Assembly (NCBI RefSeq): GCF_963921235.1
Contig: NC_086105.1
Location: 113,894,001 to 113,958,000, forward strand
Direction: 5' to 3'
Origin: Mobula hypostoma
Taxonomy: Eukaryota
DNA: 64,000 nt
Part shown: positions 2,752 through 57,473 of the stretch, piece by piece
How positions within the stretch are numbered: the first letter of the stretch is position 1
Layout of the letters: each line of letters starts with the position of its first letter
Notes under the pieces: model-generated
Database searches by the model: none
The model's input: the letters and a program-made list of their open reading frames with translations, nothing else
Told to the model about the DNA's origin: nothing
Program-made: the position numbers and the translations under genes

Positions 2752-4236
2752 CTTCAGTCTCACCAACATACAGGAGACCACACCGGGAGCACCGGACACA
2801 GTAAATGACCCCAGTAGACTCACAGGTGAAGTGTCACTTCACCTGGAAGGACTGTTTGGGGGCCCTGAATGTTAGTGAGGGGAGGAGGTGTAGGATTCGT
2901 AAGGAGTAATCCCTGCAGAAAGCAGAAAGTGGGGGGGGGGGTGGGGGGAGGAGAAAGGGAAAGGTGCTCGGTGGTGGGATCCCATTGGAGATGGCAGAAG
3001 TTCTGGAGAATTATGTGCTGGTGGGCTGGTAGGTGAGCACAAGAGGAAACCTATCCCTGGTAGGATGGCAGGAGTATGGGGTAAGAGCAGACGTGCGTGA
3101 AATAGAGATGTGGTTGAGGGCAGTAGTGATGGTAGAGGAAGAGAAGCCCCCTTCTTTGAAAAAAGGAGGACATCTCCTTCAATCTGGAATGAAAAGCCTC
3201 ATCCCGAGAGCAGATGCGGTGGAGACTGAAAAATTGAAACCTTCTTTCACTGTGATCTCTGCTGCTCTGCAACTCTTCGACTATCACCCCATCAGGCTCC
3301 ACATCGAGCACATAATTCTCCAGAATATCTGCCATCTCCAATGGGATCCCACCACCAAGCACCACTCCACCCCCCACTTTCTGGTTTCCACAGGGATCGC
3401 TCCCTGCACAACTCCCTTGTCCATTTGACCCTCCCTACTGGCACTTATCCTTGCAAACAGATGTGCTACACTTGCCCCTACACCTCTTTCCTCACTACTA
3501 CTCAGGGCTCCAAACAGTCGTTCCAGGTAAGGCAAAATTTCACCTGACAGTCTGTTGGGGTCATATACTGTGTCCAGTGCTCCCAGTGAGGCCTGCAGTA
3601 TATCAGTGAGACCTGATGAGGATTAGGAGACAATTTCACTGAGCACCTACACTCCGTCCACCAGAAGAAATGGGATCTCCCAGTGGCCACCCATTTTAAT
3701 TCCACTTCCCATTAACATTACATGTCAATCTATGTCCTCCTCTACTGTCATGATGAGGCCATACTCAGGGTGGAGGAACATCTGATATTCCATCTGGGTA
3801 ACTTCCAACCTGATGGCATGAATGAACTTCGATTTCTTGAACATCTAGTAATGTCCCCCACCCCCATTCTCTCACCTTATCTCCTTGCCTGCCCATTGCT
3901 TCACTCTGGAGCTCCACCCCCTTTCCCTTCTTACATGGCCTTCTGTCCTCTTCTTATCGGACTCTCCCTTCTTCAGCCCTGTAATCTATTTCACCAACTT
4001 CTCAGCTCTTTACTTCATCCCCCCACCTCCCTCCCAGTTTCACCTATCATCTTGTGTTTCTTTCCCCTCCCCCACCTTTTAAATCTACTCATCTTTTTTC
4101 TCCAGTCCTGCCAAAGGGTCTCGGCCTGAAATGTTGACTGGACCGTTTCTCCCCCATAGATGCTGCCTGTCCTGCTGAGTTCCTCCAGTATTTTGTGTGT
4201 GTGCTTGGATTTTCCGGCATCTGCAGATTTTCTCGT
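2752..4236. mobile_element. Penelope-like element: minus-strand segment (~2752-3240) joined to a plus-strand 3' part (~3241-4236)
   Basis: GIY-YIG relic (FT*QSVGVIYCVQCSQ*GLQYISET**GLGDNFTEHL) near 3540-3650; 2970-3020 is the reverse complement of 3310-3355; pLTR end with hammerhead relic. Confidence 0.85.
4103..4140 (+). ncRNA. Degenerate minimal hammerhead ribozyme (CUGCCAA core variant)
   Basis: cagtc-ctgccaa-agggtctcggcct-gaaatgtt-gactg; A6 and G8 altered. Confidence 0.6.
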
Positions 4237-4274
4237 TTTTGGTCCAATCAGAAATTTATCGAGTTGCAACAATA

Positions 4275-5585
4275 CCTCACAGCCCTTGAACTCAGTCTCC
4301 CAAATAATGAAAGTTAACCACCATATGCATTCTTAACCACACTACCAACCTGTGCAGATACTTTGAGAGATCTATGTATGTGGACCCCAAGATCCCTCTG
4401 TTCCTCTACACTACTTAGAATCCTGCCATTATCCTTGTATTCTGCCTCCAAGTTGGACCATCCCAAGTGTATAATTTCACACTTTTCCAGACTGAATCCT
4501 ATCTGCCACTTCTCATCCTATCAATGTCCTGTTGTAACCCATAACAACCTTCTACACTATCCACAACTCCACCAACCTTCGTGTCATTTGCAAATTTACG
4601 AACCCATCCTTCTACTTCTCCATCCTGTTCAATTATAAAAATCACAATGAGCAGGGGTCCCAGAATAGATCCCCATGGAACACCTCAGATCGTTGACTTT
4701 CAGGCAGAATATGCTCATCTACTACCACAAGCTCCCCTTGGGCAAGACAAATTTGAATCCACTCAGCCAAGTTTCCCTGGGTCCCATGCCTCCTAACGTT
4801 CTGAATGAGCCGACTATGGGGAACCATGTCAAACACCTTACGGAAATCCATATACATCACATCAATTTGTTCTGTCACTTCCTTAAAGAATTCAATTATA
4901 TCTGTGAGCCATGACCTGCACCTCACAAAGCCACACTGACTATCCCTAATTGGACTATACTTTTCTGGATGCTTGTAAATCCTGTCTCTAAGAATCCTCT
5001 CCAATAATTTTGCCATCACTGACATTAGACTCACTGGTCTATATTATCCCGAGATTATTACATTTTTTGAACAAAGCAATAACACTTGCCACCATCCAAT
5101 CTTCCGGTGGCCAGCAAGTGCACCAAAATCATTGCCAAAGGCGCTGCAATCTCTTCCCATAGTAACCTGGGGTATACAGTATTCTGCCTGGCCCTGGGCA
5201 CTTATCAATCCTAATATTTTTCAAAGCTCCCACATGTCCTCTTTCTTAACATCAACATATTCTAGCATATCAGCCTTTTTTTTTTACCCTGTACTCACAA
5301 TTATCAGGGGCCCTTTCACTGATGAATATTGAAGCGAAAGTATTCATTAGTGACCTCCCTTACCTTTTTCAACTCCAGGCACATGATTCCTCTTTTATCT
5401 CTAATCAGTTCTATCCTAGTCATCCTTTTGTTCTTTATGAACGTGTAGAACACCTTGAGTTTTTCCTTAATCCTATTCACCAAAGCATTCTCATGCCCTC
5501 TTCTCGCTTTCCTAAATCCATTCTTAAGCTCCTTCCTGGCCTTCTAGTAACAGTCTAAAGCCCTATCTCATCCTTGCTTCCTTGA
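4275..5585 (-). mobile_element. CR1 LINE ORF2 remnant
   Basis: SLMSVMAKLLERILRDRIYKH...QCGFVRCRSWLTDIIEFF...YMDFRKVFDMVPH, CR1 RT motifs with frameshifts. Confidence 0.88.
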
Positions 5586-8000: not shown

Positions 8001-8466
8001 TCTGGAATATCACCAGAGTTTTAACAGTTCCCTATTAATTCAAACAATTAATTTTACACTCATGGATTTTTTTTTGATGCTGAGGTACAATATTGCAGTA
8101 AGTCTGAGAGAATTATGCAGTTAGAATTAAAATTAAAATTAGACAGAAGACCCTTGAAGTAAAAAAAGGTTAAAAATGAAATGTTTGGGTGAGACAAAAG
8201 ATATATATAAGCAAGAACTCAAGAGACTCTGTAGATACTGGAAATCCAAGATAGCACTCAAAATACTGGGGAAACTCAGCACATCAGGCAGCATCAATGG
8301 AAAAGAGGATGAAAAAGCATCTAGAATAAGCATGTAGACTATCAAAATAAAGCGAAACTTCAATTTCTGTGTTACACAAATTGCCAAGGACATAAGGGAA
8401 TAGAAATAATTTATTTGGTAATTTTGTAAATGTAGACAAATTATGCATATTATGGTATTAAATGCT

Positions 8467-9044: not shown

Positions 9045-9655
9045 TAAATGCTATAACATAACTGACGAGGTACAGTAGTGCTGCTTTGATTCGATGAAAG
9101 TGCCATATTTCTGATTACACAACACATTTTTAGATGAGTTAGAAAACAACCAAATACAGGAATGCCAGATAAATTACAGGGCCATTACAAAAGGATAATT
9201 CAGACTGGTGTGAGACCCTACAAGGCACAGTTAAACTTGAATATTACAAAGCAATTGAGAGAACACCATAGGGCTGCCTCTTTGTTCCAGTAACATTGGT
9301 TTAGTCTCCAATTTGGGTGCTATCTGTATGGAGTCTGTCCCTTCTCTCTGAATATGGGGTGCAGGTTGGTGGTTTAACTGTCTGGGACAAATTGCCTCTA
9401 GTGTGTCATGGGGGGGTGGAGATAATCTTTGTGAATTACATGGGAGTAATGTTAGGATTAGGGTAACTAGGTGGTGAGGAAGGATGTAGATTGCAGTACC
9501 AATGGACTGGCCAGGTAGGCAAAAACATCCAGGACAAAACCAAGTATTTATTTATGGATTTGAGGGGGGAAAGCAATGTTGATCCACATATAATAAGATA
9601 GGATTCAAGAATCATCAAGAAGCCACTAGAGCAGCACAAGGCAGGGAAGCATAAT

Positions 9656-9875
9656 GCAAGGAAATCTGCAGATGCTGGAAATTGAAGCAACACACACAAA
9701 AAAACGCTGGTGAACGCAGCAGGCCAGGCAGCATCTATAGGAAGAGGTGCAGTCGACGTTTCGGGCTGAGACCCTTCCTCAGGACTGAAGGGTCTCGGCC
9801 CGAAACATTGACTGTACCTCTTCCTATAGATGCTGCCTGGACTGCTGCGTTCGCCAACATTTTTTGTGTGTGTTG
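9656..9875. mobile_element. Miniature fold-back Penelope-derived element
   Basis: Two pLTR ends in inverted orientation (~9687-9778 vs 9788-9875); perfect 13-bp TSD AGGGAAGCATAAT at 9643-9655 and 9876-9888. Confidence 0.9.
9750..9787 (-). ncRNA. Minimal type-I hammerhead ribozyme, intact core
   Basis: Reverse complement reads CAGUC-CUGAGGA-A-GGG(UCUCAG)CCC-GAAACGUC^GACUG: 5-bp stem I, CUGANGA and GAAA boxes, GUC cleavage triplet. Confidence 0.85.
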
Positions 9876-10539
9876 AGGGAAGCATAATACTTTTTTTTTT
9901 GTTTAGTCTATAATTTGCGAGATACAATGCCGCTAGTGTATGAAATAAAAGCTATAGTAATAGTTAAAGTTTGTGGACTGTTCTGGTCATTCCATTATTA
10001 GAAAGGTAGCAGGCAGAGACACACATTTGCAAGTATGTTGGCTGGTTGGGAGGTTTCTTTTAAATTAGTGAAAATTGTCTTCCCCTCTTTAGGGCAGAAT
10101 TAGACGGGTTTAATTAGAGGTATATTATGAGGCTCAAATGGGGTGAATAGGAAGGGCCTAATTCCTTTAGCAAAGCAATAATGCTTTGAGTAAATAAGTG
10201 GAAATACAGTGATTGGGGATTGTAACCTACTGTCTGAAAGAGCAGCAGAAGTGAAGATTTTCATCATGTGTAAAACATATTTGCATGAGCATTTGTCATA
10301 CTGAACCTTTTGGTTAAGAATCATGTGCTTAAAAATAGGAATACACATCCATTATTGTTTTTAAATGACTGTTACATAATGGGTTGAAAATATTCTCTCT
10401 AGACTACATATTGCAGTGATTCTGTGGAACTACTGCATCATTAATCAAGCTTCCATGGTGCCAAATGCCAATCAACTTATTACATCAATCCAGCATTCAC
10501 CCTGATGTAAACAGTGCTTTCTTTACCATATCCACTCTG

Positions 10540-11585
10540 CACTAATCACTAAGCTTCAAAACTTCAGCTTCTGTTCCTCCCTCTGTAACTGGATCCTTGA
10601 CTTCCTCATTGGGAGACCATGAATCAGAGCAGATTGGAAACAACATCATCTCCTCACTGACAAACACCAGCACATTGCAAGGATGTGTGTTTAGCCCACT
10701 GTTCTACTCTCTTTACATCCATGACCATATGGCTAGGAACAGCACAGATGCTATCTATAAATTCACTGATGACACAACCGTTACCTGCAGAATCTCATAT
10801 GGTGATGAGGAGGCATGCAGGAGTGAGAAAGATGCGTTGGTTGAGTGGTGTCACAACATCAACCTTGCACTCAGTAAGACCAAGGAACTGATTGTGGACT
10901 TTGGGAAGGAGAGTCAAGGAAAACACACCAGTCCTAACCAAGTGGTCAGCAGTGGAAACGGTGAGCCATTTCAAACTGATGAGAGTTAACATCTCAGAAG
11001 GTATACCCTGGGACCAACATACTGATGCAATTAGGAAGAAGGCATGCCAGTGGCTATATTTCCTTAGGACTTTGATGAGATTTCCTCATCAAAGACTCTC
11101 GCAAATTTCTAGAGATGCACCATGGAGAGCATTCTAACTGGTGGCAACCCCTCCTGGTATGGAGGGGTCACTGCACTGGATCAGAAAAGCTGCAGAGGAA
11201 TGTAAATGCAGTAGCCTCCAAACCATCGAGGGCATCTTCAAAGGGCAATGCCTCAAAAAAGTGGCACCCATCATTAATGACCCCCATCCACCCAGGACCA
11301 CCTTGTCTCATTACTACCATCAGAGAGGAGGTACAGGAGCCCAAAGACATTCACTCAACATTTTAGGAACAGCTTCCTTCCCTCTGCCATCAAATTCTAA
11401 ATGGACAATGAACCCACGAACATTAACTCACTACTTTTGCTCTGTGAGCACTACTTATTTAATTCTCTCTGTATATTTATTTGTTCTCATAATCTATGGC
11501 AATATTTTATGCATTGTACTGAATGGCTATCGCAAAACAACAAATTTCATGACATATGCCAGTGATAATAAATCCAATTCTGATA
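10540..11585 (+). mobile_element. Rex-Babar LINE 3' remnant
   Basis: LQGCVFSPLFYSLYIHD...IYKFTDDTTV...SKTKELIVDF; tail gataataaatccaattctga. Confidence 0.85.
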
Positions 11586-14500: not shown

Positions 14501-16530
14501 AAATCTGTTGATTGTAGGATGCATAACTGCAGAGTAGTTCACCCAACTGCCTCCTTGGCAGGTGAAAAACCAAGGTACTAGGTGAGAAATTTTTATTTGG
14601 GAGGTAGATAGTGCATGTGGTTATTTGTTGGTACAGGAGTAGTGTACACAAGATGAAGTAGTAATGCACATGGATGATTCTGCTTGATGCTACTTCTTTT
14701 TCTCTACAACTTAAACCACAATCCAAAGAACCTTTTTTGTGTAATGAAGTGCATGCTTGAATACATATAACAGATGTGGGTCACAAACAGTGCCTTAGAG
14801 TAAAATACACAAATCATGTGAAGAAAATAATTAGTTCTCTGTTTTAGTCTTCAGGATGTTTTCAAATTAAGTTCCATGAGCTCAAACAGAAACATTTCGG
14901 ATTTTGAAAAAAAAAATAAGATCGAGGAGAATGGATTTGAATACAAGTTAGTATGAGTGCTGGTGGGATGGAGTGGCAGGTGTTTGTGGGGCAGGGGGAG
15001 AGGAGAACTATCTTGTCCTATGTCAAAATATTCATATATTTTTACACAGAATACTTACATCTAGGATCATATTCGTCTTCATTGGTTCATAACATCTACA
15101 ATTTCTACCACAATGTCACGTGGCAACTTATTAAAAGATCCTCTGAAGCAGCAGTCAGTAACAATAAAATTAATGCAATTTGAATCTCTCCTGAAATTGT
15201 AAATATTTCTTTACATTCAATCCAACAACTGTATAGGCAGTGACAATAAACTTCACTTGAATACTTAATTGAGGTGTCCGACCTTCAAAACTGTCCACCT
15301 TTGTCAAGAACTCATATTGTTTTAAAAATCCAAGTAGCTAATCAGAAATGTATTGAAAGTAAAAGTAGCCGTAATACAACAATCAGCAGAATCATGAGAA
15401 ATCAAAAAAAAGTTATTTTCATAGAGTTTTTTTTACCCTAACTTATTCAAATCTAATCCAATTATGTAACCGGATTTTGCAGCAATGATTGGAAAAAAGA
15501 TATTCCATGCCCCTAGTGCCGTTTAAAAAATGATCAGATTTAACAAGTTTTGCATCATGATAAGTTGTTGCACTTTCCTTTAAAGTACTTTTATACAAGT
15601 TTCTGCTTTTAATATCTATGGGAAAATGTGTATTAAAGTTGTGAAAATAATGTTTTTGACTGTCATGGAAAATGGGCATTTTTGGAGTTACGCATCCATT
15701 TTACAGATCTATGAATAACTAAACATTATAAAGTGAAACATTTACGTTATATTACTGTCCTTCAGAAATGAAATGATAACACCTTAATTTTGGATTTTTT
15801 AAAGAAAAATACTATGAAAGATTCTTCAAAGTTTTTTTATACATACAATCCACATTTACGGTACAATATTAAATGCTCCATGGTGACCCACACAGTGAGC
15901 AAAACAGTTTCGATATTTAATAAACCTATTAGGTGACCATATAATAACTGTCCAGCAGGTAATTTTTTAACCAATTTGGTGTAGACTGCTTCAGGACTCC
16001 TTTGGATGGCAATCTCTGTTACCTAGCATTTTTGAAAAATTAGTATTTATGTGCTACAATTAAATGACATGATCCTAAAATTATGTTACGTCAAATCAAA
16101 GAATCAGCACAAGTTATTTTGCACAAATGCCACTTTGTTGAGAATTTCATAACAAAATTTAAAACTACACTATTAATTTAAAAATAAAACTCCAAATGTG
16201 TAGAAGTTGTTCAAATATTGACTTTATTTCTGCTTTATGTCTCATATATGCATAATAAAGCAAATAGTCGAGGCTGAGAATATTACTTTCTCATTTCATT
16301 GAAAGGCTTGATGAAATGGTCAACTTAATGAATGTAATTGGGTGGCATGGGCCCTTTGGACTGGAAGGGCCTGTTAATGTGTTGAATCTGTTTAACAAAA
16401 TTGTCTTTCTGACAAGAAGCCAAATATTTTGCTCTACAAGACATCATCATTTCAGAAAATCTCCTATCCAACAACTGTTAAAGTGGGTAAAGTGTTAAAT
16501 ACACATTTCCATTGGGGGGGGAGGAGAGAG

Positions 16531-16581
16531 TGTGTGTGAGTGTGTGTGAATGTGTGTATATACACACACACACACACACAC
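16531..16581. repeat. Imperfect (TG)n-(TA)-(CA)n microsatellite
   Basis: Read directly from the sequence. Confidence 0.9.
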
Positions 16582-19500
16582 GTCATAAAGCTTTTATTAA
16601 TGATTATTATTCAAAATTATTTTAAAATTGTCAGAGAATATTTCTACAGAAAGAAATTGCTTTTTTCAGGTTTAAACATGGAGGTTTACAAGTGCTTATT
16701 CCAATGCAACTAAATGTAGCTGCTGTTTCAATTTTCAGTATTTTGTTTTGCTTTTCAAACTAATTAGAAGAGCTATTCTCCAACAAAATTTGAAGAACCA
16801 AGTTTGTGGATATCTCCATGACATTTGTTAATACAGCTTGTGCCTTCATTTCCAAATTTCTCCTCTAAAAAGTAAATGTACCTAGGTGTCAGGATGAGGG
16901 GAAAAGAACCATTTCTCTCTCCTACTTGATACAAACTCAGCATCCACTTGCTCAGAAATACTGATACTCCAGGATCTGGCTGACTAATTAGTTATCAACC
17001 AGCAGTGCAAGATGCAGCACTATGATAGGCCAGAGCTCAGGATCAGCATGACCAGGGCCAAGATCTTCAACACTAGTGATCAGGAACTTGGGTAGCTTTA
17101 TGGCTGGAACTGGTGTCCAGAGTGCTAGTATCTTTCCAGCTCCCTTTATGCTCACCAGAAAATTTACTACACTACTGTATAATATGTAAAAAAAAGATAT
17201 AAATGTGCTTGGATATTATTAGGAGTAATGTTCAATAGTCTAGAAATTCAGCTAGTCCAACCATGCCAAATCACTTTTTCTATCTTTCTCATTACATAAA
17301 ATTTTATTGCAATTTGAGAACTTGCGCAATATTTACAAAGGCAGATTTCAATAATTTTCTCAATCTCATTAATCTTATTTGTTTTTCCTCAACATAAGGT
17401 ATTGTAAGATATTTCATACTATGGTAATGAAATTACCATGAAATAGAAGCCTTCTGCCTATTGTGCTTGCTGCCAATATATCGTGATTAGACTCAGTACT
17501 AGTGAACATAAATGAACAGAAGCACGATGTATTGCCCAAAGTACTTGACTGCAAAACACATATGCTATGGCAATTTTATCCCACCAAATACTAGCTAATA
17601 ACAACCATCAGTACAAAAATGCAGTATTACACACTGTCCTTGCTAAACTGAGTCAGTGCTTGATGAGGTAAAGCATAAAAGACTAAGAGCAACGATTATT
17701 CAAAGTTCACAACTTTGCCCTATGATAAACCATATGTACTTCCCTATGCGGTGCTATGTTCATGAATGTTTCCTACTGTCAATTTTTTTAAAAACTAATT
17801 CAAGCATTCAAGAACACTGTATGATCTGCGATGTTTAATTATAATAGAGAACCATTAACAAGCTCTATAAAAAGCACAAGTCCATTTCTAGTCTCCCTAT
17901 TGCACACAGTTTTCTGGAATGTGTTACAATAGCAAACAGTACAGAACTTTCCAAAAAAAAAGTCAGTATTTCAAACTTAATTTCAAAAAATGTGAAGAAA
18001 ATTGGGTTAATACTCAAATGATGCCTGCCAGGATTTTGCAACCATTTAAAATTCACATCAATTAATAGATTTCAAGTTCATTTTGACATAATGACCACAA
18101 AAATCCACAAAGGACAAAAAAAAAGATGATGTTGTTGATAATCTTTGTAACTGGTTCCACTAAAGAAATTGACAGGGCACAGACGTGATGGAGCAAAGAG
18201 CGGTTGCTGACCTGTCCAGTTCTCGGGATACTGAGATCCAGAGAGCCTCTTACCAAAGCCAGTAATCTCAGAAAGATAACATGGAAGTGCATTGCAGTAG
18301 TAAAGACATGAATAATCTTGTATTGATAGCTAACATTCAATATTAGTGAATTCAAAATTAAACTCCAATTATTCCTTCCCTTGTCATCTTCAAAGGGTTA
18401 GACTTCAGCACTCCTCACTTCCATGTCAGGAATAAACCTGGTAGGACCAAACGTACCAAGAGCCAAGGAGTTTTAACACAGGAAATCTTTACTGCCATAC
18501 CTCACCAGATGTTAAAGTCTAGGTAGTAGCGCTGTCACCACAAGAGTATCCTGGAACTGATGTGTGGCTGAGATTTGACGTTATCTGATGGTTTTAGTAG
18601 CAAAGACAAATTATCTTCCTGGAAAAGCAGCAACTGTCAGAATTCAAAATTAGAAATGTTCCTACCATTCTGCATTAAAGGCATCAACATCTTTGTTAAT
18701 TCTATTTCCCTTACATTGTGCATATCTCTTGGGTAATGTTTAAATATTGTTAAAATATAACCAATTAATGAATGATTGTAATAGGACACAATCCCTTCAC
18801 AAAGGGAAGGGAGCAATACCCTGATCTTTTTCTTTTCCAGTTCATCCTAAAATGTGTCATCCCACATTAAATGAACTGCTATAAAGAATACTGAACTAGA
18901 TACCTACATTTTACCTGCAAACTATTCCAAACAAATATACTCAAACAATTAATAAAAGTGTCAAACCTAGATTTTATAATTCATATAATAAAATGGAATA
19001 GTTTTAAAATTATTTTCAACATGCCAAGTTTCTGAAAATGTCATTCTTTTTCTTCTCTACCCTCTATTCTTTGAGGTGTATTTATAGTTCAAGAATTTTG
19101 GGACTTGCCTTTGCAGCACTATTATTAGATGTCTTTATTATACTTATGTAAATTTGTGACCTACCATTATTTCCAAATTCCTGCTGCAGTTACACATATT
19201 CAAGTTTTAAAATACACTTAAAAATAGACTTTGGACCTGGGTGAACTGAATTTCAAACAATGTGGGATAAATTACTGACGGCAGTAATATTGTTCTGCAA
19301 TAATAGTGCTGTTGAGCTCAGACCACTGATTATTTTAAGATTTAACAATATGAAATAAACTTCATGTTATAACTACGAGTGGGGCTTAGAAATATAAAAG
19401 CAGCATAGTGTTGCAATAAGAAAACAAAAAAAATGCAATTTCATCAGATCTAATTGTAGTCAGTCTTTGTCTCACCAGAAGATGTGAACAGTGTTCAACC

Positions 19501-19618: not shown

Positions 19619-19995
19619 AGCAACACACACAAAATGCTGAAGGAACTCAGCAGGTCAAGCAGCATCTATGAAAATTAATAATTGTCAACATTTCGGACTG
19701 AAGATTCTTCTTCAGGACTGAAAAGGAAGGGGGAAGATGCCAGAATAAAAAAAAGTTGGGGAGAGGGGAAGGAGACTAGCTGGAAAATGATAAGTAAAGC
19801 CAGGTGGGTGGGAAAGCTCAAGGATTGGAGAAGAAGGAATCTGATGGTAGGAGAGGAGAATGGACCATAGGACAAAGGGAAGGAGAAGGGGACCCAGGGG
19901 GAAATAACAGGCAGGTGAGAAGTGAAAGTTCAGAATGGGTAATCGAGGAAAGGAGGGTGCAGGTGGGAAGAAAATCAGTTTACTGGAAGGTGAAA
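19619..19995 (-). mobile_element. Penelope-like pLTR fragment within the putative FOXK1 3' UTR
   Basis: caacacacacaaaatgctgaaggaactcagc... plus a purine-rich tract; homologous to 3900-4210. Confidence 0.85.
19682..19720 (-). ncRNA. Degenerate minimal hammerhead ribozyme
   Basis: Reverse complement CAGUC-CUGAAGA-AGAAUCUUCAGUCC-GAAAUGUU-GACAA; core boxes kept, stems I and II eroded. Confidence 0.55.
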
Positions 19996-26690: not shown

Positions 26691-26949
26691 TTGCAAGACA
26701 TATTAATAAAAACTATTATTTCAATAAAAAGTACATATATAAAAAAAATACACAAAAAAAAGAGGAAGAACCTACTGAGGAAGTGTTTGTGGGTTCATTA
26801 TCCATTCAGAAACCTGATGGTGAAGGGGAAGAAGCTGTTCCTGAAACAATGAGTGTGTCTTCAAAGGAAGACACTTGGCACAATCATGCTTTCAAATAAT
26901 ATGATGTAAGGTATTTGTTATCTTTATCTGGTGTACCCAGGATTCAGGA

Positions 26950-36410: not shown

Positions 36411-36662
<252 letters not shown>

Positions 36663-36887
36663 TCAAATAGAAAATCTATTTTCATCCACAGTCTTCAATA
36701 TATACCTTGCATTCACATTATGATGTAAAATAGTGAATTTGACAATAAGACAGACTGATTTAATCCCAAATGAATATGGCATAATGATTCAAACAAGAGG
36801 AAGTCTGCAGTTGCTGGAATTTCAAGCAACACACACAAAAAATGCTGGTGAACGCAGCAGGCCAGGCAGCATCTATAGGAAGATGTA

Positions 36888-36925
36888 CAGTCGACGTTTC
36901 CGGTCGAGACCCTTCATCAGGACTA
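36888..36925 (-). ncRNA. Minimal type-I hammerhead ribozyme, intact core, sense to FOXK1
   Basis: Reverse complement UAGUC-CUGAUGA-AGGGUCUCGACCG-GAAACGUC^GACUG. Confidence 0.82.
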
Positions 36926-37134
36926 ACTGAAAGAAGAGATAGTAAGAGATTTGAAAGTGGGAGGGGGAGGGGGAGATCCGAAATGATAGGAGAAGACATG
37001 AGGGGGAGGGATAGAGCTGAGAGCTGGAAAGTTGATTGGCCAGGGCTTCCCCCTCCCCCTTTCTTTCTCCCTACACCTTCCATCCCATGAATCCTTTCAT
37101 ATCCCTTTTGTCAATCAACTTCTCTTCTTTCAGT

Positions 37135-37172
37135 TAGACCTGACAAAGGGTCTTGGCCCGAAACATCGACTG
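37135..37172 (+). ncRNA. Degenerate hammerhead (G8A)
   Basis: tagac-ctgacaa-agggtcttggccc-gaaacatc-gactg. Confidence 0.6.
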
Positions 37173-37845
37173 CACCTCTTCCTATAGGTGCTGCCTGGCC
37201 TGCTGTGTTCACCAGCATTTTTTGTGTGTGTTGCATGGCATATTTATTGATGAATCCACATGTTAAAGAGTATGGAATTGCTTCTGTGAAGATGGTCTAA
37301 ATTTTGAATATTAAGGCAGGGATGGATTTTACATTAGTGAGCAATCAGTGAAAACTTGAGTACCACCAAGTAATTTAGCAGGCACTGAGGGTACAGCAGG
37401 AATAACATTGAACATAAGTGCTTTCAGCCCAAGACATTGTGCTGACCTTTTAACCCAAAAGATCAATCTAATGCTTCCCACCTCCATTGCCCTCCATTTT
37501 AACATCTTTCCCCTCATCTGACATGATGCAGAGGAATGGCAGGTTGCATTCCTTTTTGTAATAATCACAATCAAGTCAGATAATTCATGTAGTTCTTTGG
37601 CCTCTCTGTTTTGAAGTGCATTTTCTGTATGTATCATGGATTTCACCTGATTTTTAAGGGATAATTTCATTGAGTACAGGCTGAGGATCACGCAATTCCA
37701 AATTGGATACTATACTGCCATCACTGGCATAATAATGTTACATGGCAGATGTTAGCGCATAGGATTTTTGTCAAGTAAATGGAAGTTTAAAATGTTATTT
37801 TATGAACAGGAAGTTTTGGAAAACAAACATTAAAGGCTGTGTTTA

Positions 37846-40519: not shown

Positions 40520-41820
40520 TTAAAATATAGTTTATATAATGATCACTTTATATAACACAGGTATGTTTCCATAAGAGATTCTATCTGGATGAATGTGCAC
40601 CCAGAGTTTATCTTTTTGATAGCTGTAATGAGAAGAAAGTCTCTGAGCTTTGACATTTGTGTCTTTTCACAGAGTACAGTTACTTTATGCATTGAATTTG
40701 TGCAAATTTCTTGTAAATGTTTGAATGATGAGCATTGCTTTTCAAAACACCATGGCAACTCTAATTACTACGATTTAAAACCAGGTGACTGCATTAGGAG
40801 AAATAATCTTTAAAATACAACTTGATACTTCATAATATTGACAATGATAACTTGAACAGAACTACAAATTTTGATAATTATTCCGAAGCATATTTTGTAT
40901 TTATCTATATGGCTCCTTGAGAAATGTAAGCATCTCAAAATAGGCACATGGAGGGCCAGTTTTGGTACTCAAATCATTGTATTGAACAAGACTCTGCATG
41001 CACAAGAGATTTTAGGAAATTTACCCTCTTGCTGGAGTATACCAAAACACTATTAAAAATTAATTTCTTACAATTGATCTCTGAGGAATGCAATGGTAGA
41101 AAGAATCACAAACCTGAATGTAAAAAATGAGTCAGCTCATTTGGCATTTACTAGCAATTTTGCAAAAAAACATGGTTGATTCACTACAAAGTTCATTACC
41201 CTCACTGATTCAACATGCTTAAGCCACAACACACTGAAACAACATTCTTCTTTAGGCATTAAGATCACAGAATGGTATTATATAATTGGAAAATGTACGA
41301 AATCTAATGAACATCTTTTGTAAATCTTGATTGAGATATTGTGATTTTCCTTTACAAACCATGTATTATTTATTATTAACCATGAAAGTTTCTACAAATC
41401 AATTGCATTGGAGCTTGGTTCACCTCCATTAAATGTTAATAATATAGATAACTGTGGTTATTAGTGAAGTGAATAGCCTTGCACTAGAAATGTAACACTT
41501 ATCTTTGATGTTATAAGCTTTTTAAGTACATTTTTGAGAGCAGAATGGCTCAGAGAATTTCAAATTAAACTATCTAAGATTTAATCAAGTAAGATTGAAA
41601 ATCCACTATTGCAACTAACTCAATGATCAAAGTACAGAAGAATAATAACAATCAGAGCATTGAAATTTAAGGAAATCTGCTAGATGCAATTATGGAAGCA
41701 GAGTGTGACAGTAATAAAAATGTTTGAAGATACATAGAAGGGTGAAGATGAACCATGAGGCAAGTTTACAACAGGGGAGCAGTGAGGGCAGTGCAGCAGA
41801 AAGAGAGAAAACAAGTGTTA

Positions 41821-41922
41821 ACACGAGGAAATCTGCAGATGCAGGAATCCTGACGAACAGTCTCAGCCCGAAACGTTGACTGTAACTCTTCCTAGAGATG
41901 CTGCCTGGCCTGCTGCGTTCAC
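41821..41922. mobile_element. 102-bp Penelope-derived micro-element containing a hammerhead motif
   Basis: Inverted tail acacgaggaaatctgcagatgc fused to ctgacga...gaaacgtt-gactg (41850-41882); 12-bp TSD AAACAAGTGTTA (41809-41820) and AAACAAATGTTA (41923-41934). Confidence 0.82.
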
Positions 41923-43119
41923 AAACAAATGTTAGACATTTTCAAAGGAAAAAGAAAGAAAATGTGCCAACAGGAGTTACCAAAATAGCACCAACCACCA
42001 GTCAAAGTGGAAACCTAATGATAAGATAAGATAAAATAGAGGAACAGGTCAGGAGCAAGGTGAGTTAAATGATGATGATGAATATGATGGAACCTGGTGT
42101 GAACTGGGCTGGACAAATCAGGGTCAAAGCAGGTCACCATGATAGGAGAACAATGTCATTAATTTAATAGACCATAAAAAACTACCCTGTCTGGACTAAA
42201 TAGATTTACTAAGTTAATTAGTACACAATCAGCTTGCTTACCAGTGAGAATGTGCTCCTAAGAACAAATGTACTCTTGGAATCAGCACTGAAATAGATCA
42301 TTATAGCATACAGGTGCATTGCTGACAGCAACACTGTGCTAAAATATGTTCAAACATTTTAAAATAGAATGAAATATATATGCAGATATCCTAATTTTTC
42401 ACAAGGTCAGACATGTCTTGATTCAGTAGACACAATAACTGAGAAGAAAGTAAAATCTGTCATAGTAAATAAAAGTTTACAAATACAATATGCAAAGCAG
42501 TGGGTACATTATGGAAAACGATCGTTCACTTTATATATAGCTCTTCTGGTGTTAACGAGCAATTATTTACCTACTTCTTCACACCAATTCCTGTGGGATA
42601 GCTTTTGTACGCTCTATGTCATCTACGTTTGGTGGCAACTGAGGTGGAGCATTTGTATCACCTCCTGATTGTGATTCATTGTTTCTTTCCATAATTAGAA
42701 TTCTGGCATAATACAGATCACCTATTCTTGTTCAATAAGGAATGTAGAAGAAACTTCCCATTACATTTGAGGACAATTGCTGATAATGAGATGTGCAATA
42801 CGGGAACCTAACTTGGGTCTCCTGTTACAAAACTGAAGCTACAATTCCCAAGGATGCAAAAATAATCTAAAAGTAATCAACTCACTAAGAAGTTAAATCT
42901 AAAGCTCGAGTAGAATCAAATGGTTTAAGGTAGAAGATGATTTCCCCCGACAACGTAACTGTAAAAAAATAATCTGTTGAACAAATTTAGAGTTAAAAAT
43001 TAAAGATTAGCATTTTTATTTTTCAGATGTACATTGAAACTTCAATACAGTGAAATGTGTAATTTTGTGACAAATTGACTCAGTAAGAATTGTGCTAGGC
43101 AGCCCGTTAAGTATCATCA

Positions 43120-43300: not shown

Positions 43301-43607
43301 TTTGTGAAAATTACCTATTTTACCTAGTTCCCATTTTACGAATGCTCTAAATTATAAAATTCAGTATTTGAGTGGTGGAGATATGGGCAAGTTTATGGAT
43401 TTAACAGTGCTGGTTTTTGTCAATGCCTGAAATACAATTCTCTCTAACCACATTGGAACTCCAAACCAGGAATGCAAGAGTCTAGCTTTCAGGACATTAA
43501 TTCTTCCAAAACGCCATAAAAATATTGAACCCTGTAATTTAAGATCAGACTTGTTCTCCAACTGGCTCCTTTTCAATTGAAGACAAACTAAACATTGAAT
43601 TTATTTA

Positions 43608-44359
43608 GAAACGAGAGAAAAATCTGCAGATGCTGGAAATCCAAGACACACACATAAAATGCTGGAGGAAGTCAGCAGGCCAGGCCACATCTATGAAAAG
43701 GAGTACAGACAATGTTTCGGACCGAGTCCCTTTGGCAGGACTGGAGAAGTAAAACTCCAGTCAGAATGGGGCTCCATCTGCCAGAAAAAAAGGGATCTTC
43801 CAGTTGCCACTTATGCTGCATCCGCTAGAAAAAGCGGGATTTCCCGGAGGCCACCCATTTTATTTCCAGGTCCCATTCCCATACATCCAGCCATGGCCTC
43901 CTCTACTGCTATGATGAGGTCACACACAGGTTGGAGGAACAACACCTTATATTCCGTCTGGGTAGCCTCCAACCTGATGGCATGAACATCAATCTCTTGA
44001 ACTTCCAGTAATGCCCCACCCTCCCCTCCCCTTTACCATTTCCCATCCCCTTTTCCCTCTCTCACCATATTTCATTGTCTGCCCATTGCCTCCCACTGGT
44101 GCTTCTCCCCACTTTTCTTTCTTGCATTGCTTTCTGTCTCTTTCACCAGTCAACTTCCCAGCTCTTTACTTCATTCCTCCCACTTCAAGTTTCACCTATC
44201 ACCTTGTTTCTCTCTCCCCTCCTCTCACCTTTTAACTCTATTCCTCAGCATTTTTTCCTCCAGTCCTGCCAAAGGCTCTCGGCATGAAATTTCGACTGTA
44301 CTTTTTTCTATAGACGCTGCCTGGCTTGCTGAGTTCCTCCAGCATTTTGTGTGTGTTGC
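43608..44359. mobile_element. Truncated Penelope-like element with inverted pLTRs
   Basis: Perfect 13-bp TSD TTGAATTTATTTA at 43595-43607 and 44360-44372; hammerhead relics at 43706-43743 (-) and 44261-44298 (+), both with CTGCCAA core. Confidence 0.9.
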
Positions 44360-47000
44360 TTGAATTTATTTAATCGGGGTTGTGGGGGTAAAGAGAGAAC
44401 ACAGGATCCAGAATATGATCTTCTGTATATAGTTCCAATAGAGTTAATCAGTTAACTTGTGTTTGAAGTTTTCATTTAATCCGCAGCTAAAATATACTTC
44501 TGTTAAATATTATTCCGGCATATCTCCTAAAAAAAAAATCCTGGCATCATGCCTGAAAAGTTGTGTCTAAATTTAAGATTATATTTCCTTGCTCCAGATT
44601 TGCATCATCAAAGGAAATACCAATTTTTATCTATCAAATCATTAATTGTCATAACTAGTTCATTTAGGTCTCCCCTTAAAAGTTCTAATCTCAAGAATAC
44701 AATTAGAGATGTGGTGACTGTATGTACTGACAGCAATAACAAAAATAAATTAAGTTACTTGAGGGGTTTTCATTCATTCAAAATATTGGAACCTATGACA
44801 CAAAAAACATATAATCCCATCCTCCTGTGGCTAGCAGCTTTACAAACTGATGATTATTAGTCGATATACATTCTAAAAATACAATAACTAACAACTGTGG
44901 CAACTCGTACAGTAAGCAGAGATCCAGGTCAAAGTTTGACAGAAATACTAAACTGTCTATTGATTTTTTTTCCCTTTGGTATCCACCCCCTATTTAGTAT
45001 CTATTTACAGACTTGGACCTCTTTCTGAAAATCTGCAGACACAGACTCCTAAGCCATCATTCTTTAGTGATAAAGTTCTGAAGATTGCCCCCAAGCATGT
45101 CAAAAACATTGGAGAAAATTGACCCATCATTGCAAGAAAAAATATGATACAAAATGAGGCACAAAATTATTGCAATAAACAGGTATCAATTTCCTGCTAA
45201 TAATGAAGGTGCCAAGAAGTACGTTCCAGATGAAACCAACATCATCACTGTCTCATAGAAATTTGATCAGACAAAATGTTTGAACAACTTTTCAAAAAAT
45301 AAATTTCTGGTAAGCTAGAAGAAAACAACAAAACAAAGTCTTTTTATCAAAAAGGAGAATTTCAATGGGATATTACTTATGATGGGGATAAGTTCATCAA
45401 AATGGAAAAGGGAAACAAGTAATTTGTAAAGAACAAAATTGGTTTATCAGATTTAAAATTGCATTTCTTTCTGCAATCTAAACATTGACCCATTGATCAT
45501 TTTATTCTGTCACGCTACTCAAGTCAAGAAGGAAACTGAAAAATTAGAAGAGTCAGTACTAGCTTTAAAAGCACATCTTTAGTAACTATACATATAATTA
45601 TGGCAGGGCAAAATATACATAGCCATGAATCCTTTGTTCTTATTAAATGTTGAGCTCTTATTTGAATTTTCTGCTGCAAGAAACGCAAAATTACAATCCT
45701 CAAAAATTTTTTAAGTACAAAGGGCCATGAATGTGATCATCTACTGCTAGCACTCTTGCCTAGGAACAGCAAAACAATAGCGTATGTACTACAGCTATGC
45801 ACTAATGTTCTACTTCCAGGCATAAGGTAACTGAAATCATATTCCACTAACAATCTCCTTTGATTTTTCTTTTATTTCCAGATAAGTACGGGGGCAACAA
45901 CAGTGAACTAGAACCAAACTGGAGATCAGCAACAATTTTACATCCAAATTAATGAAACTGGAATCTATTTATATGTTGTTTGAATCAATACATCTTGGGC
46001 CAACTAAAGAATCAAGGCAGCAAGAAAGAAGCTACAAAAAAAGCTGGAATGCACCAAAAAGAATACAAGTTGAATAAAAATCTACATTTCAGTACTAATG
46101 TCATTCTTACCAGGCACGGGTTAGAAAACAAAAGATGCGTAACAATTAACACGTACATCACTAAGTATGACACCTCCAACAATCAACGGTCTCAATATTA
46201 TGTTAAAATGTTAAACTAATCACGATTCTCTCGAAGTTTGGCTGAAATACAGTTATTTCTGCTTCAACTGGAAGAGATGCCAATCAAAAAGAACCAAAGC
46301 CTTGCTTTCAAATGAGAATGGGCATATACATAACTGTACAACATCTTATCTAGCCAAACTGCTCTTTCACACTTTCAATGAGATGGATAAAAAAACAATC
46401 ACATCCTTCACAGTGGTGTTCAGTGAGAAAATCAATACAGTAATAATTACAGTAGGAACAAGGGAAAACACTTACTCAGCTCTGCACACAGCCAGAGGAC
46501 AGCACAAGGGAAAAAGAAGGCAAAAATTGTCAGCACCACTGCACCATGTTTTGTCCTTTTACGAGAGCATTTGGGATTATTGGACATACCACAATGCATT
46601 TGGGATTATCTATCCCTCAGCAGCTGAGAATTTTGGAACAGAGTATTCCAAATAATAAAGCATTGATATTTACTCTGCCACAAAACAGGTTATGTGCATT
46701 GGAGTAGTTGCAGTACTTTCTACAGGGTTCCTGTACAGTCAAGTCTATCTTTATACCAAAGCATTCCTCAGCCCAATCTTGCTCCTATCACAATTTGCAT
46801 TGTAAAAAGATATAGGTATGCACATGGCCTCTCCATGTTACCGTAGTTTCTCTTGGGTGCACATAATTAAACATTTGAAAAGACTATTCAAAATAGTCAG
46901 CCCCAGCACTAATCAATGTTTTTTTACATATAAAATCAGAATTGTTCAAGACATACTGTGAACTTATCCAAAAGTATTTCACAATTTAAAAGAAGCATTA

Positions 47001-50102: not shown

Positions 50103-50933
50103 GACATATTGATGTCAGCTTGGCCCTCCCCATTAGCACTTATCCCTGCAAACATGCTAAATGTTATACTGCCCCTACATCTCCTCTTTCAACACTATTC
50201 AGGGCCCTAATAAGTCCTTCCAGATCAGGCAGTACTTGACATGCAAATGTAACAGTGTAATTTATAGTATGTGTTGTCCCTGGTGTGGCCTCCCCTACAC
50301 TGGTGAGATCCAATGTAGATTGGGGAATTGCTTCCTCAAGCACCTTCCCTTTGTCTCCTGTACAGCCAAAATCTTCTGGTGGCCAACTATTTCCACATCC
50401 TCAAACAAACTAATCGGTCCACAGCCTCCTCCACTGCCATGTTGAAGCCAGACACTGACTGGAGGAGCAATGCCTCATATTCTGTCTCTCCAACCTGACA
50501 GCATTAACATCAATTTCTGTAACTACCAGGAATCACTACTCCCCTCTATTCCTTCCCCATCCCATTTCCTCTTGGTCCTGTGGCCCTGTAAACCCTTGTC
50601 TTCCCCTTTCCCCACCCTCATGACTTGCCCATCACCCACATCTTCCTCCCTCTGGTTCCCTACCACCCTCCCTTTATTCCACAGCCTACTGTCCTCTCCT
50701 ATCAGAATCATCCTTCTTCAGCACCTTGCTTCTCCTATCAAATACCTCCAACTTCCCAGTGTTCCCTTCCCCTCCCCCACTCTACTGCCTTCTCCCATCA
50801 TCTGCCAATTTCTGTTCTGCTCCTCCCCATAGCCTTTTATTCTGACCTCTGCCCCCTTCCTTTCCAGTCCTCCATTTCCCTCCATTGATGCTGCCTGACC
50901 TGCTGATTCCTTCCAGAGTTTTGTGTGTGTTGA
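50103..50933 (+). mobile_element. Penelope-like 3' remnant, hammerhead core deleted
   Basis: GIY-YIG relic LTCKCNSVIYSMCCPWCGLPYTGEIQCRLGNCFLKHL; pLTR tail gatgctgcctgacctgctg. Confidence 0.85.
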
Positions 50934-51231
50934 TTCTTTAATTTTATTAGTTTAGTAACACAGTAAAAATAAATCCAGGTCTAACATATTATTCAGAGTA
51001 CAATTAACTGAGATTTAGAGGAAAGTTGGTATTGTGAGTTCATTATTGAATTACATATCCAGAAGCTTGGAAATGATAGTCTGATGGCATAGATAATTAC
51101 ACGACTAGGTCATTTAATCAGTTTACCTAAGTTTTGGAAATGAGAAAACTAGTATCAGTAATAGTAAAATATGATCTGGCTCCATAATTGCTTTTTGGAA
51201 TTTTTTAGAATCACAAGGCAGCAAACTCTTA

Positions 51232-51386
51232 GCAACACACTTAAAAATTGCTGGTGAACGCAGCAGGCCAGGCAGCGTCTCTAGGAAGAGGTACAGTTGA
51301 CGTTTCAGGCCAAGACCCTTCGTCAGGACTAACTGAAAGAAGAGATAGTAAGAGATTTGAAAGTGGAAGGGGGAGGGGGAGATCCG
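51232..51386 (-). mobile_element. 155-bp solo Penelope pLTR fragment
   Basis: 8-bp TSD AACTCTTA at 51224-51231 and 51387-51394; nearly identical to 36826-36980. Confidence 0.88.
51294..51331 (-). ncRNA. Minimal hammerhead ribozyme, core intact, stem I mismatch next to the cleavage site
   Basis: Reverse complement UAGUC-CUGACGA-AGGGUCUUGGCCU-GAAACGUC^AACUG. Confidence 0.72.
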
Positions 51387-55340: not shown

Positions 55341-56600
55341 TAGTGGATTCTGGTCAATTGGGCGATCAGTTAGTCGGGGCAGCTGTTTATTTGGAACAAC
55401 ACTGAAGAATAAAAACTAATAGAGAAAACAGCCAGGATTAATTTGGGACACCACGCCCCTTAATTGGGACAGGAGACAGTTGCCAAATAGTTTCCAACTA
55501 GCATCAATTGTGTTAAATTATCCATTTGGGTTAACGGGCACTGATTCAAAAAACAGTGATTTTTAATAATTTTGTCTTTAATTTTGACTCTACAAAATTT
55601 CAGACCCTTGCCAAGATGCCGTGAAAAGATTTGACATTGGTCCAAAAAATTATCCTATAGAATCAAATTAAAAGCCATCTGCCTAACAGTGTTAGCTGGA
55701 AGAGATAACCAGAGTGTCGAAATCTACAATTGCAAGCTTGATAAACTGTGGGAAGAACAGGCATTACGCAAGAGACAACGGGAACCCCCAAGAATGGAAG
55801 CATAAAGGCAAGGATGCAGATGTTGAAGAGGACCTCAATCAATGGTTTTCCAATTTAACAGGACACGGTATGCACATCAGTGGACCCATGTTAAAAAGCA
55901 AGTCAGCGGAGCTAGCTAAGACACTGAGTTATTAAGTTTTTAAAGCTACAGATGGTTGGTTGTCTCAGTGGAAATGTAGGCGCCACATTAAATTCAAGAA
56001 AGCACATGGTGAGAGAAGTAGTGCTGGTGCAATAAGTGCAGAAACATATAAATCTACAAAACTCCTTCAGTTGCTTCAAAAACTTTGTACCAATGAACAG
56101 GTCTTTTTAATCGTGCCACATTGGACGGTTTTCTTTGCTACAAACACACATTATCGTGTTCAAAGAAAGCAATGGATCACATAACTGTGTTGTGTTATTC
56201 ACATATGTTAGCAATTGATAAAAAGAAATTGGTTATTGGGAGAAACATTAAGCCTCGATGCTTTAAGTAGCTAAGAATGGATAGTTTACCTGTCAAGTAC
56301 TATGCTAATATGAATGCTTGTTAACAATTGTGTAGCACATCTAATTTAGAATGTTTGAAAAACATTCAGCTGGAATTTCCGGCTGCCAATGCAACATCCT
56401 TAGTGCAGCTGATAGACATGGGAACAATAAACAATTTAAAGAAGGTGTACCATGGAAAGTTGGCGAACCACATTCTTGAAGCAATTGAAAGAAATCTACT
56501 GACATCTTCTTCAACAGCCAAGGGCGTGCAAGGGTTAACCTTTTACAGGCAGAACCAGTTTACTGCCAATCATTTGTGAGAAATAAGCAGTAAGACAACT
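55341..56600 (+). mobile_element. Tigger/pogo DNA transposon remnant
   Basis: CENP-B HTH relic DVEEDLNQWF...ISGPMLKSKSAELA...FKATDGWLSQWK..RHIKFKKAHGE; DDE relic EFPAANATSLVQLIDMGTINNLK; TA followed by TIR-like start. Confidence 0.85.
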
Positions 56601-57473
56601 CAGAAGCCGGAACTTCTACCATCTCCAACGGGATCCCACCACCAAGCACGTCTTTCCCTCTCCCCCCTCACCCCCCCAACTTTCTGCTTTCCACAGGGAT
56701 CTCTCCCAGGCACGATTCCCTTGTCCATTCGTTCCTCCCCACTGATCTTCCTCCTAGCACTTACCCTTGCAAGCAGACCAAGTGCTACACCTGCCCCTAC
56801 ACCTCTTCCCTCACTACCATTCAGGGACCCAAACAGTCCTTCCAGGAGAGGTGACACTTCACCTGTGAGTCTGTTGGGGTCATTTACTGCGTCTGATGCT
56901 CTTGGTGTGGCCTCCTGTATATTGCTGAGACCTGACTTAGATTGGGAGACCGCTTCTCCGAGCACCTGTCCGCCAGAAAAAGAAAGGTCTCCCAGTGGCC
57001 ACCTATTTTAATTCCACTTACCATTCCCATTCCAAAATGTCCATCCATGGCCTCCTCCACCATCATGATGAGGCCACGCTCAGGCTGGAGGAACAACACT
57101 TTATATTCCAATCTGATAGCATGAACATCAATTTCTCAAAATTTCAATAATGCCCTCCCCCCCTTCACCATTCCCCATCCCTTTTCCCCTCTCTCATCTT
57201 ATCTCCTTGCCAGCCGATTGCTTCATGGCCTTCTGTCTCCTTCGCCAATTACCTTCCCAGCACTTTACCTCATACCTCCCCCTTCAAGTTTCACCTATCA
57301 CCTTGTGTTTCTCTCTCCTCTCCCCCCACCTTTTAAATCTACTCAACTTTTTTTTCTCCAGTCCTGCTGAAGGTCCTCGGCCCAAAACATTGACTGTTTA
57401 CTCTTTTCCATAGATGCTGCCTGGCCTGCTGAGTTCCTCCAGCATTCTTGTGTTGCCTGGATTTCAAGCATCT
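56601..57473 (+). mobile_element. Penelope-like 3' remnant with degenerate hammerhead at 57359-57396
   Basis: FTCESVGVIYC...LLYIAET*LRLGDRFSEHL GIY-YIG relic; cagtc-ctgctga-aggtcctcggccc-aaaacatt-gactg. Confidence 0.88.

Follow-up and report, generated by a model that had tools for sequence, protein, structure and literature searches.

A putative minimal hammerhead ribozyme in the 3′ tails of an abundant Neptune-type Penelope-like element family of a ray genome

Introduction

A hammerhead-like motif recurs along a 64,000-nucleotide stretch of the genome of the ray Mobula hypostoma (contig NC_086105.1, positions 113,894,001 to 113,958,000; this whole stretch is called the window below, and all positions refer to it). 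It raises the question of whether the motif is a ribozyme, which element carries it and whether its individual copies can still be expected to cleave. An earlier note, made from the letters of the sequence, had described here about 11 minimal hammerhead ribozyme motifs hidden in the terminal repeats of Penelope-like elements (PLEs). Minimal hammerheads of PLEs have been known as a class since 2014, and there is little new in kind in the present ones; as far as the literature consulted shows, the specific family found in this ray has not been described.

Results

A 38-nt Block with the Architecture of a Minimal Hammerhead

The 11 sites are all homologous: each holds a copy of the same 38-nt block, set within a retroelement tail of ~180–250 nt. 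The positions and orientations given in the earlier note held at 11 of 11 sites, and its claim of a very high density of the motif (11 per 64 kb) is upheld. An nhmmer profile made from nine of the copies recovered the same 11 sites in the window, as well as two related tails that lack the block, 8222–8319(−) and 50835–50955(+). The exact pattern CTGANGA-N-GAAACGTC was matched three times in the window, with 0.00 matches expected from 100 shuffles.

The majority consensus of the eight full copies reads CAGTC-CTGACGA-A-GGGTCTCGGCCC-GAAA-CG-TC-GACTG. Judged by its letters, this 38-nt consensus is a perfect minimal type-I hammerhead, consisting of a 5-bp stem I, the CUGANGA box, a bulged A, a 4-bp stem II, the GAAA box, the palindrome ACGU and the GUC triplet. 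The type-I architecture proposed earlier thus agrees, feature by feature, with that of the published minimal PLE hammerhead (PMC4209133). Among the window copies, 89% of the stem cells are paired, versus 12–44% when the partner strand is slid.

A descriptor search, which the earlier note had also proposed, was run with a strict pattern of our own: stem I of at least 4 bp, CUGANGA, an optional bulge, a stem II closed by G-C or G-U, GAAA, UH and a palindromic helix III. The search retrieved a single match in the window, 9750–9787(−), so that only one of the 11 copies passes; no matches were found in 200 Markov-shuffled windows. It follows that “about 11 ribozyme motifs” is right as a count of homologous copies but too high as a count of ribozymes: of the 11, one is canonical, a further two near-canonical and the remaining eight relics (Table 1).

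The CUGANGA and GAAA boxes are kept in the consensus as they had been written earlier, but most sites do not have both of them intact. Five of the ten copies that cover the CUGANGA box keep it (CTGAGGA at 9750, CTGATGA at 36888, CTGACGA at 51294 and 41850, and CTGAAGA at 19682); it is lost at 37135 (CTGACAA), at 4103, 43706 and 44261 (CTGCCAA) and at 57359 (CTGCTGA). GAAA is kept in 10 of the 11 copies, and U16.1 followed by C or U is found in all 11. The ACGU palindrome survives in four of 11, the others reading ACAU, AUGU or AUUU, mostly via CpG decay, and the G10.1–C11.1 pair is canonical in four of the eight full copies. Many of the changes in the block are CG→TG or CG→CA at its CpGs, and the pairing defects of the 51294 copy (G.U and A.C) are likewise due to CpG decay. 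In the 41850 copy, the 5′ strand of stem II is mutated and the stem is broken.

The cut positions that had been predicted for the 9750 and 36888 copies, 9755^9754 and 36893^36892, are arithmetically correct. A double hammerhead paired via ACGU would be feasible at −19.9 kcal/mol, yet it is not the predicted minimum-energy dimer. The earlier note had added that such hammerheads work best as dimers. A dimer needs two same-sense copies, and the paired copies of the window are inverted, so that they cannot provide these within one transcript.

Table 1. Copies of the hammerhead block, the insertions that carry them and related remnants in the window (TSD, target-site duplication; UTR, untranslated region).
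Feature	Positions	Strand	Details
Sole fully canonical minimal hammerhead	9750..9787	−	CAGUC/CUGAGGA/A/GGGU-CUCA-GCCC/GAAA/CG/UC^/GACUG; predicted cut 9755^9754
Partial copy	9788..9814	+	begins at A9 (AAGGG...), reads ACAUU; inverted arm of the 9750 insertion
Near-canonical copy	36888..36925	−	boxes, ACGU and GUC intact; G.G mismatch at 10.1–11.1
Relic	37135..37172	+	G8→A (CTGACAA), ACAU, one stem I mismatch
Near-canonical copy	51294..51331	−	boxes, ACGU and GUC intact; G.U at 10.1–11.1, A.C at 1.1–2.1
5′-incomplete copy	41850..41882	+	begins at ~C3, no stem I 5′ strand; CUGACGA and ACGU kept; triplet GUU
Sublineage B relic	4103..4140	+	CUGCCAA (A6→C, G8→A), AUGUU
Sublineage B relic	43706..43743	−	CUGCCAA, ACAUU
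Sublineage B relic	44261..44298	+	CUGCCAA, AUUUC, broken stem II
Sublineage B relic	57359..57396	+	CUGCUGA (A6→C), AAAA replacing GAAA, ACAUU
Relic of a third, more divergent lineage	19682..19720	−	CUGAAGA kept; stem II decayed, 1-nt insertion; AUGUU; stem I 3/5 paired
Inverted pair 1 (one insertion)	9658..9876		TSDs 9644–9657 / 9877–9890, 13/14 identical; best 12-mer 12/12
Inverted pair 2	36797..37234		weak TSD 36776–36785 / 37235–37244, 9/10; best 12-mer 10/12 (~2% by chance)
Inverted pair 3	43608..44359		exact 13-bp TSD 43595–43607 / 44360–44372 (13/13); best 12-mer 12/12
Mini-insertion	41825..41922		25-nt inverted tail piece joined to truncated copy; TSDs 41809–41824 / 41923–41938, 14/16; 12-mer 11/12
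Longest copy (~920 nt)	3320..4241	+	CxxC linker, decayed GIY-YIG endonuclease, ~270-nt 3′UTR, hammerhead relic, long tail
GIY-YIG endonuclease remnant	3554..3823	+	4 stops; GVIY...YISET, CCHH (CVQC...HLH) and DGMN readable
Long copy (~880 nt)	56607..57484	+	CKQTKCYTC linker; decayed endonuclease at 56873–57129
Related tail without hammerhead block	50835..50955	+	block missing directly after CCAGUCC; endonuclease remnant upstream, 50275–50497
Tail-only fragment without hammerhead	8222..8319	−	

The Carrier Is an Endonuclease-Bearing Penelope-Like Element

Three copies reach far upstream of the block, 3320–4241(+), 56607–57484(+) and 43808–44359(+). Conceptual translations of the upstream sequence show the broken end of a reading frame, with the readable motifs C-x3/4-C-x2-C, GVIY...YI(G/S/A)ET, C..C...H.H, LEEQHLIF and DGMN; the linker can be read directly as CKQMCYTC at ~3455–3480 and, in the variant shown in Table 1, in the 56607 copy. 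A search of a large protein collection yielded one intact relative of 97 amino acids, P0001, which carries no name and whose top Pfam match is GIY-YIG, below threshold (15.6 vs. 22.6 bits). With P0001 as a tblastn query, the window was matched at 3554–3823(+) (E = 3.6e-26, 55% identity) and, further, at 43808–43990(+), 56873–57129(+), 2741–2809(−) and 50275–50497(+). All these remnants, except 2741–2809(−), lie upstream of tails of the same orientation. No Pfam match was obtained for stop-free pieces of the endonuclease region of the window, and the ESM Atlas look-up of a 60-amino-acid piece gave no usable match.

Neptune/Nematis-type PLEs are defined by a C-terminal GIY-YIG domain with CCHH and a preceding CX2-5CxxC linker (PMC8557442). 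Read from its sequence, the carrier is an endonuclease-bearing (EN+) PLE of the Neptune type, the clade being assigned from the linker and endonuclease motifs alone. The hammerhead is situated 210–270 nt past the endonuclease stop codon and 100–140 nt before the 3′ end of the insertion; past the block, the repeat continues with a linker, then the core ATAGATGCTGCCTGGCCTGCTG, which is very conserved, then a T-rich/(GT)n stretch and finally the end.

Several further pieces were noted in the window. The fragment 2741–3019(−), just upstream of the 3320–4241 copy, is an inverted internal Penelope piece from the endonuclease region; it has no 3′UTR, hammerhead or tail of its own and represents either an incomplete inverted arm or the outcome of a later deletion. 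The tail at 50835–50955 represents either a clean deletion of the ribozyme block or a lineage without it. Matches to Pfam RVT_1 at 4642–5034(−), 10597–10989(+), 25622–26041(+) and 27969–28427(+) belong to unrelated repeats that resemble long interspersed elements (LINEs); LINE-type reverse transcriptase fragments include 27432–28427(+), and the region 4262–5538 matches 28808–27488.

Inverted Pairs, One-Sided Tails and Recurrent 5′ Junctions

Three insertions are inverted pairs, joined head-to-head with their tails pointing outwards, and one is a mini-insertion; each lies between target-site duplications (Table 1). In 2000 random controls, the best 12-mer match was never 12/12 and was 11/12 in 0.2%. 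In all three pairs, one arm ends with ...GTGTGTTG, while the other arm adds 30–43 nt (CTTGGATTTCCAGCATCTGCAGATTT...). The long tail is on the left arm of 9658–9876 (30 nt, with the short end on the right arm), on the minus arm of 36797–37234 (~41 nt, with the short end on the plus arm) and on the minus arm only of 43608–44359 (38 nt; the arms measure ~175 and ~560 nt). The short end sequence of the insertions is ...GUGUGUUG. Measured from the block, the copies begin anywhere between 0 and ~780 nt upstream, which is the pattern expected from truncation.

A one-sided tail of 30–40 bp has been described as unique to PLEs (PMC8557442). In an anole PLE, such a tail has been explained by reverse transcription that starts at two internal sites, and the enzyme of that element cleaves and extends both DNA strands (PMC11167929). 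By analogy, priming from both strands would give exactly the tail-out inverted pairs seen here. The assignment to Penelope made in the earlier note is thus borne out by the GIY-YIG remnants, by the inverted 5′-truncated pairs with target-site duplications and by the one-sided 30–43-nt tail. Its term “terminal repeats”, that is, pseudo-long terminal repeats (pLTRs), finds no support here: none is visible as a repeat in the window, which contains only the 3′ ends of 5′-truncated copies.

Two points within the block recur as 5′ junctions, represented in the window by position ~5 (..CCUGA; 41850) and position ~12 (AAGGG..; 9788). Contigs of two organisms show the same two intra-block junctions at other loci, as joints to 37139 and 37146. 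This recurrence suggests that reverse transcription has a preferred point at which it stops or switches template.

Two further peculiarities of the insertions were observed. The mini-insertion ends with ...GCGTTCAC (41915–41922), upstream of both usual 3′ ends, despite its 14/16 target-site duplication; this end may be a third start site of reverse transcription. At 43771–43854, a 44-nt tandem duplication (1.9 copies) of endonuclease-coding sequence lies exactly at the arm junction of the third pair.

Genome-Wide Contigs

Logan contigs of two DNA runs, one from an organism that matches the window exactly and one from a close relative, and of two RNA runs were aligned at 80% likeness on 36600–37400; the same runs were aligned on the copy of sublineage B (see below) at 4040–4245. 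The summed word depth over the block was ~4 × 10^6, versus 19 in unique flanks, in the first organism and 9.5 × 10^6, versus 42, in the relative. Block depth is thus ~2 × 10^5 times the unique depth in both organisms, which suggests around 10^5 family copies per genome, a rough indication from depth rather than a true copy number; the density of 11 per 64 kb in the window agrees with it.

We counted block variants carried by at least 10% of depth among the differences listed. Position N7, which is U in the 36888 reference, is C in 44% of depth, and position 11.1 is C in 46% and U in 52%; the G found at 11.1 in the 36888 reference is rare genome-wide (about 2% of contig depth). The remaining common variants lie at two positions of stem II/loop II; one of these differences is peculiar to the reference. 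Invariant core bases, stem I and ACGU are untouched by the differences listed. For C7pG8 and C11.1pG12, both CpGs, about half of depth has the C→U change, which spares the ribozyme, while the partner G→A change, which would kill it, is absent among the differences listed. Neutral CpG decay should be symmetric; from these depth-weighted contigs, we therefore infer either selection on source elements or founder variants.

Loose contig ends pile up at 36887 and at 36922–36924, the exact borders of the block; therefore, sublineages have the block in common but differ in the sequence directly beside it. Depth drops ~5-fold at roughly 110 nt upstream of the block. The family is also represented in the RNA libraries, as contigs of the RNA runs show. 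Canonical letters were somewhat commoner in contigs of the RNA runs than in those of the DNA runs: C15.2 was present in 90% vs. 70–74%, and C17 in 87% vs. 65–72%.

Outside the block, the tail core ATAGATGCTGCCTGGCCTGCTG (4159–4193 and 36843–36869) had 2–10 times the summed contig depth of the hammerhead block; therefore, either many more copies carry it or other repeat families carry the tail core too. RNA-run depth of ~75 and ~30 fell to 0 at 36653/36654 (36600–36653 compared with 36654–36761), which looks like the edge of a minus-strand exon; the 36888 hammerhead is ~235 nt away.

A Sublineage with a Dead Core

Established mutational work on hammerheads shows that catalysis requires both A6 and G8. 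In the contigs aligned on 4040–4245, A6 is A in 53–68% of depth and C in the remainder, and G8 is G in 63–79% and A in the remainder. The C6 and A8 states have near-equal shares, with a depth of ~2.4 × 10^5 in one run (X1). The sublineage with the CUGCCAA core (sublineage B) accounts for 21–47% of depth on the 4103 copy, or roughly 10^4 copy-equivalents. All four copies of this sublineage in the window share C6, though they are just 70–80% alike. Because C6 is shared by these copies and runs deep in the contigs, CUGCCAA was inherited by a multiplying sublineage and does not represent private decay. Window copies of the young lineage (lineage A) are all ≤250 nt and never reach coding sequence.

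Other Structures in the Window

Apart from the elements described above, Rfam searches of the window produced only spurious sub-threshold microRNA matches on palindromes and microsatellites. Positions 59466–59585 form a near-perfect palindrome with a 50-bp stem (−102 kcal/mol, z = −21) and sub-threshold mir-15 matches on both strands; it is probably a fold-back transposon or one resembling miniature inverted-repeat transposable elements, and not a microRNA. At 26948–27018 and 16528–16590, palindromic (GT)n/(CA)n microsatellites gave sub-threshold matches to mir-297, mir-466 and families like them, which are low-complexity artefacts.

Discussion

We consider it probable, at about 85%, that the block represents the minimal type-I hammerhead, lacking helix III, that belongs to a very abundant Neptune-type PLE family of the ray genome. 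The region of the block would form a pseudo-LTR in a tandem copy, and the copies in the window would be fossils of target-primed reverse transcription. Synthesis would start inside the 3′ region at alternative sites, giving either a short end or a long end with 30–43 additional nt, and would usually stop early, leaving 5′-truncated copies; priming would often occur from both sides of a staggered break, which would produce tail-out inverted pairs between target-site duplications of 10–16 bp. In the RNA of a source element, by analogy with known systems, two same-sense blocks may pair via ACGU into a double hammerhead that would be cut after GUC. After insertion, the block would decay, fastest at its four or five CpGs, which would therefore leave one copy intact, two nearly so and eight dead.

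A number of observations weigh against this reading. The Rfam hammerhead models gave no match at gathering score or at E ≤ 10, either on the whole window or on a 66-nt stretch; this is expected because these models include a helix III hairpin, which has no counterpart in the minimal variant. No compensatory changes or covariation were seen among the eight full window copies, and within the window the block is no better conserved, by identity, than the tail core ATAGATGCUGCCUGGCCUGCUG. Neither a PLE reverse transcriptase nor a full-length copy nor a direct pair of pLTRs is present within the window, where every copy is cut off upstream of the linker. There was no pile-up of ends at GUC^G in the RNA-run contigs, although contigs cannot show absence. 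Every genomic copy spans GUC^G, and therefore the template RNA was either uncut there or religated. Published activity in vitro is low for metazoan minimal hammerheads (PMC4209133); the anole PLE does not need cleavage for insertion in vitro, and there are no RNA ends at its hammerhead site (PMC11167929). Lastly, the dead-core sublineage still multiplied after its core had changed.

By an alternative reading, the block would derive from a hammerhead but not work as a ribozyme even in the source elements; it would be retained for some other function or for none, e.g., as a structured site that the element’s own protein recognises, as a place where reverse transcriptase pauses or switches template, or as a passenger. 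This alternative is rather unlikely, though it accounts for the ~10^4 copy-equivalents of a CUGCCAA sublineage that multiplied after core loss, for the 5′ junctions that recur at block positions ~5 and ~12 both in the window and at other loci and for the descent of all copies from RNA uncut at the site. The low activity in vitro (PMC4209133), the dispensability in vitro (PMC11167929) and the existence of successful PLE clades without hammerheads (PMC8557442) also speak for it. However, the common variants of the young, dominant lineage avoid all invariant core positions, only the ribozyme-sparing change is common at the two CpGs, and canonical letters are somewhat enriched in RNA-run relative to DNA-run contigs; in addition, canonical EN+ PLEs universally carry hammerheads (PMC8557442).

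A related and tentative proposition is that hammerhead catalysis is dispensable for vertebrate Penelope retrotransposition in vivo, the folded block serving mainly to stop the reverse transcriptase or to make it switch template. We regard this as rather doubtful; it draws on a sublineage whose core, first CUGCCGA (A6→C) and then CUGCCAA, would already have been dead in the source element before thousands of copies were made, and on the junctions at ~5 and ~12. If it is true, the core selection in the young lineage would have to serve another step, e.g., the processing of tandem source transcripts.

It is quite improbable that the short copies represent a non-autonomous unit, similar to a retrozyme or a short interspersed element, which is mobilised in trans by a Penelope enzyme and perhaps forms small circular RNAs. 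The lineage A copies of ≤250 nt without coding sequence and the ~5-fold fall in depth ~110 nt upstream of the block would fit such a unit, and animal retrozymes originate from PLE pLTRs according to a 2026 preprint (bioRxiv 10.64898/2026.07.22.740005). Against it, the 5′ ends of the copies are scattered over 0–780 nt upstream, unlike those of a fixed unit, and the upstream 100 nt of lineage A are homologous to the 3′UTR of the long, endonuclease-bearing copies. A retrozyme array was rejected, as Tandem Repeats Finder detects no tandem array of hammerhead units in the window, where the nearest same-strand neighbours are 2.4 kb apart. Chance likeness of a repeat to the hammerhead consensus, which could be argued from the single copy that passes the strict descriptor and from the silence of Rfam, is effectively refuted by the absence of matches in 100 and in 200 shuffled controls and by the agreement with five independent published PLE-hammerhead features inside an element that has PLE hallmarks.

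The preferred reading, a minimal PLE hammerhead, can be compared with several known systems. Like the metazoan minimal hammerheads of PLEs (PMC4209133), the ray block is of type I without a helix III hairpin, has a palindrome at 15.2–16.2 that permits a double hammerhead, a 5-bp helix I, an unpaired base between A9 and G10.1 and a G10.1–C11.1 pair. It also lies downstream of an open reading frame (ORF). Truncated copies mostly carry it as a dispersed single motif, though at times two lie close together on opposite strands; its copy number is very high and its sequence varies much. It differs from the Schistosoma hammerheads of that survey in its helix II, which has 4 bp and a CUCG loop instead of 7–8 bp, and from the hammerheads described there in general by its elasmobranch host, absent from the survey’s descriptions, and by the CUGCCAA core of one sublineage.

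The Neptune EN+ PLEs of fish (PMC8557442) share with the carrier the C-terminal GIY-YIG endonuclease with CCHH, the preceding CX2-5CxxC linker, 5′ truncation, an inverted 5′-truncated partner, a tail of 30–40 bp at one end and a hammerhead in the pLTR region; the comparison with Neptune is one of motifs, as the reverse transcriptase and the 5′ part are not in the window. Poseidon PAc of Anolis carolinensis (PMC11167929) likewise has two versions of its 3′ end, one longer than the other by a tail segment, which has been explained there by internal initiation of reverse transcription, and the cleavage and extension of both strands in that system would give the tail-out pairs seen here; as in PAc, RNA ends at the hammerhead site are absent, here from RNA-run contigs. 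Unlike the ray carrier, PAc has no CxxC linker, and its ORF starts at hammerhead stem II, whereas the AUG in CUGAUGA is not conserved in the ray. An ORF starting from this AUG was considered and rejected: N7 varies among all four bases, and in 36888, the only copy with a CUGAUGA box, the frame is closed after 15 codons. Animal non-LTR retrozymes (PMC7229834; bioRxiv 10.64898/2026.07.22.740005) resemble the short copies in bearing hammerheads, in being non-coding and in their derivation from PLE pLTRs; however, they are tandem, carry canonical type-I hammerheads and form circular RNAs, whereas the copies studied here are dispersed, minimal and non-tandem.

For the genome of the ray, this means that about 10^5 ribozyme-like relics escape annotation based on Rfam. 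Introns hold these relics in either orientation, and annotation should mask them as Penelope tails instead of scoring them singly as ribozymes. The dead-core sublineage and the recurrent intra-block junctions are the only points possibly worth genome-wide work. The young lineage with its canonical core and the older lineage that inherited a dead core form a natural comparison on whether transposition needs the ribozyme.

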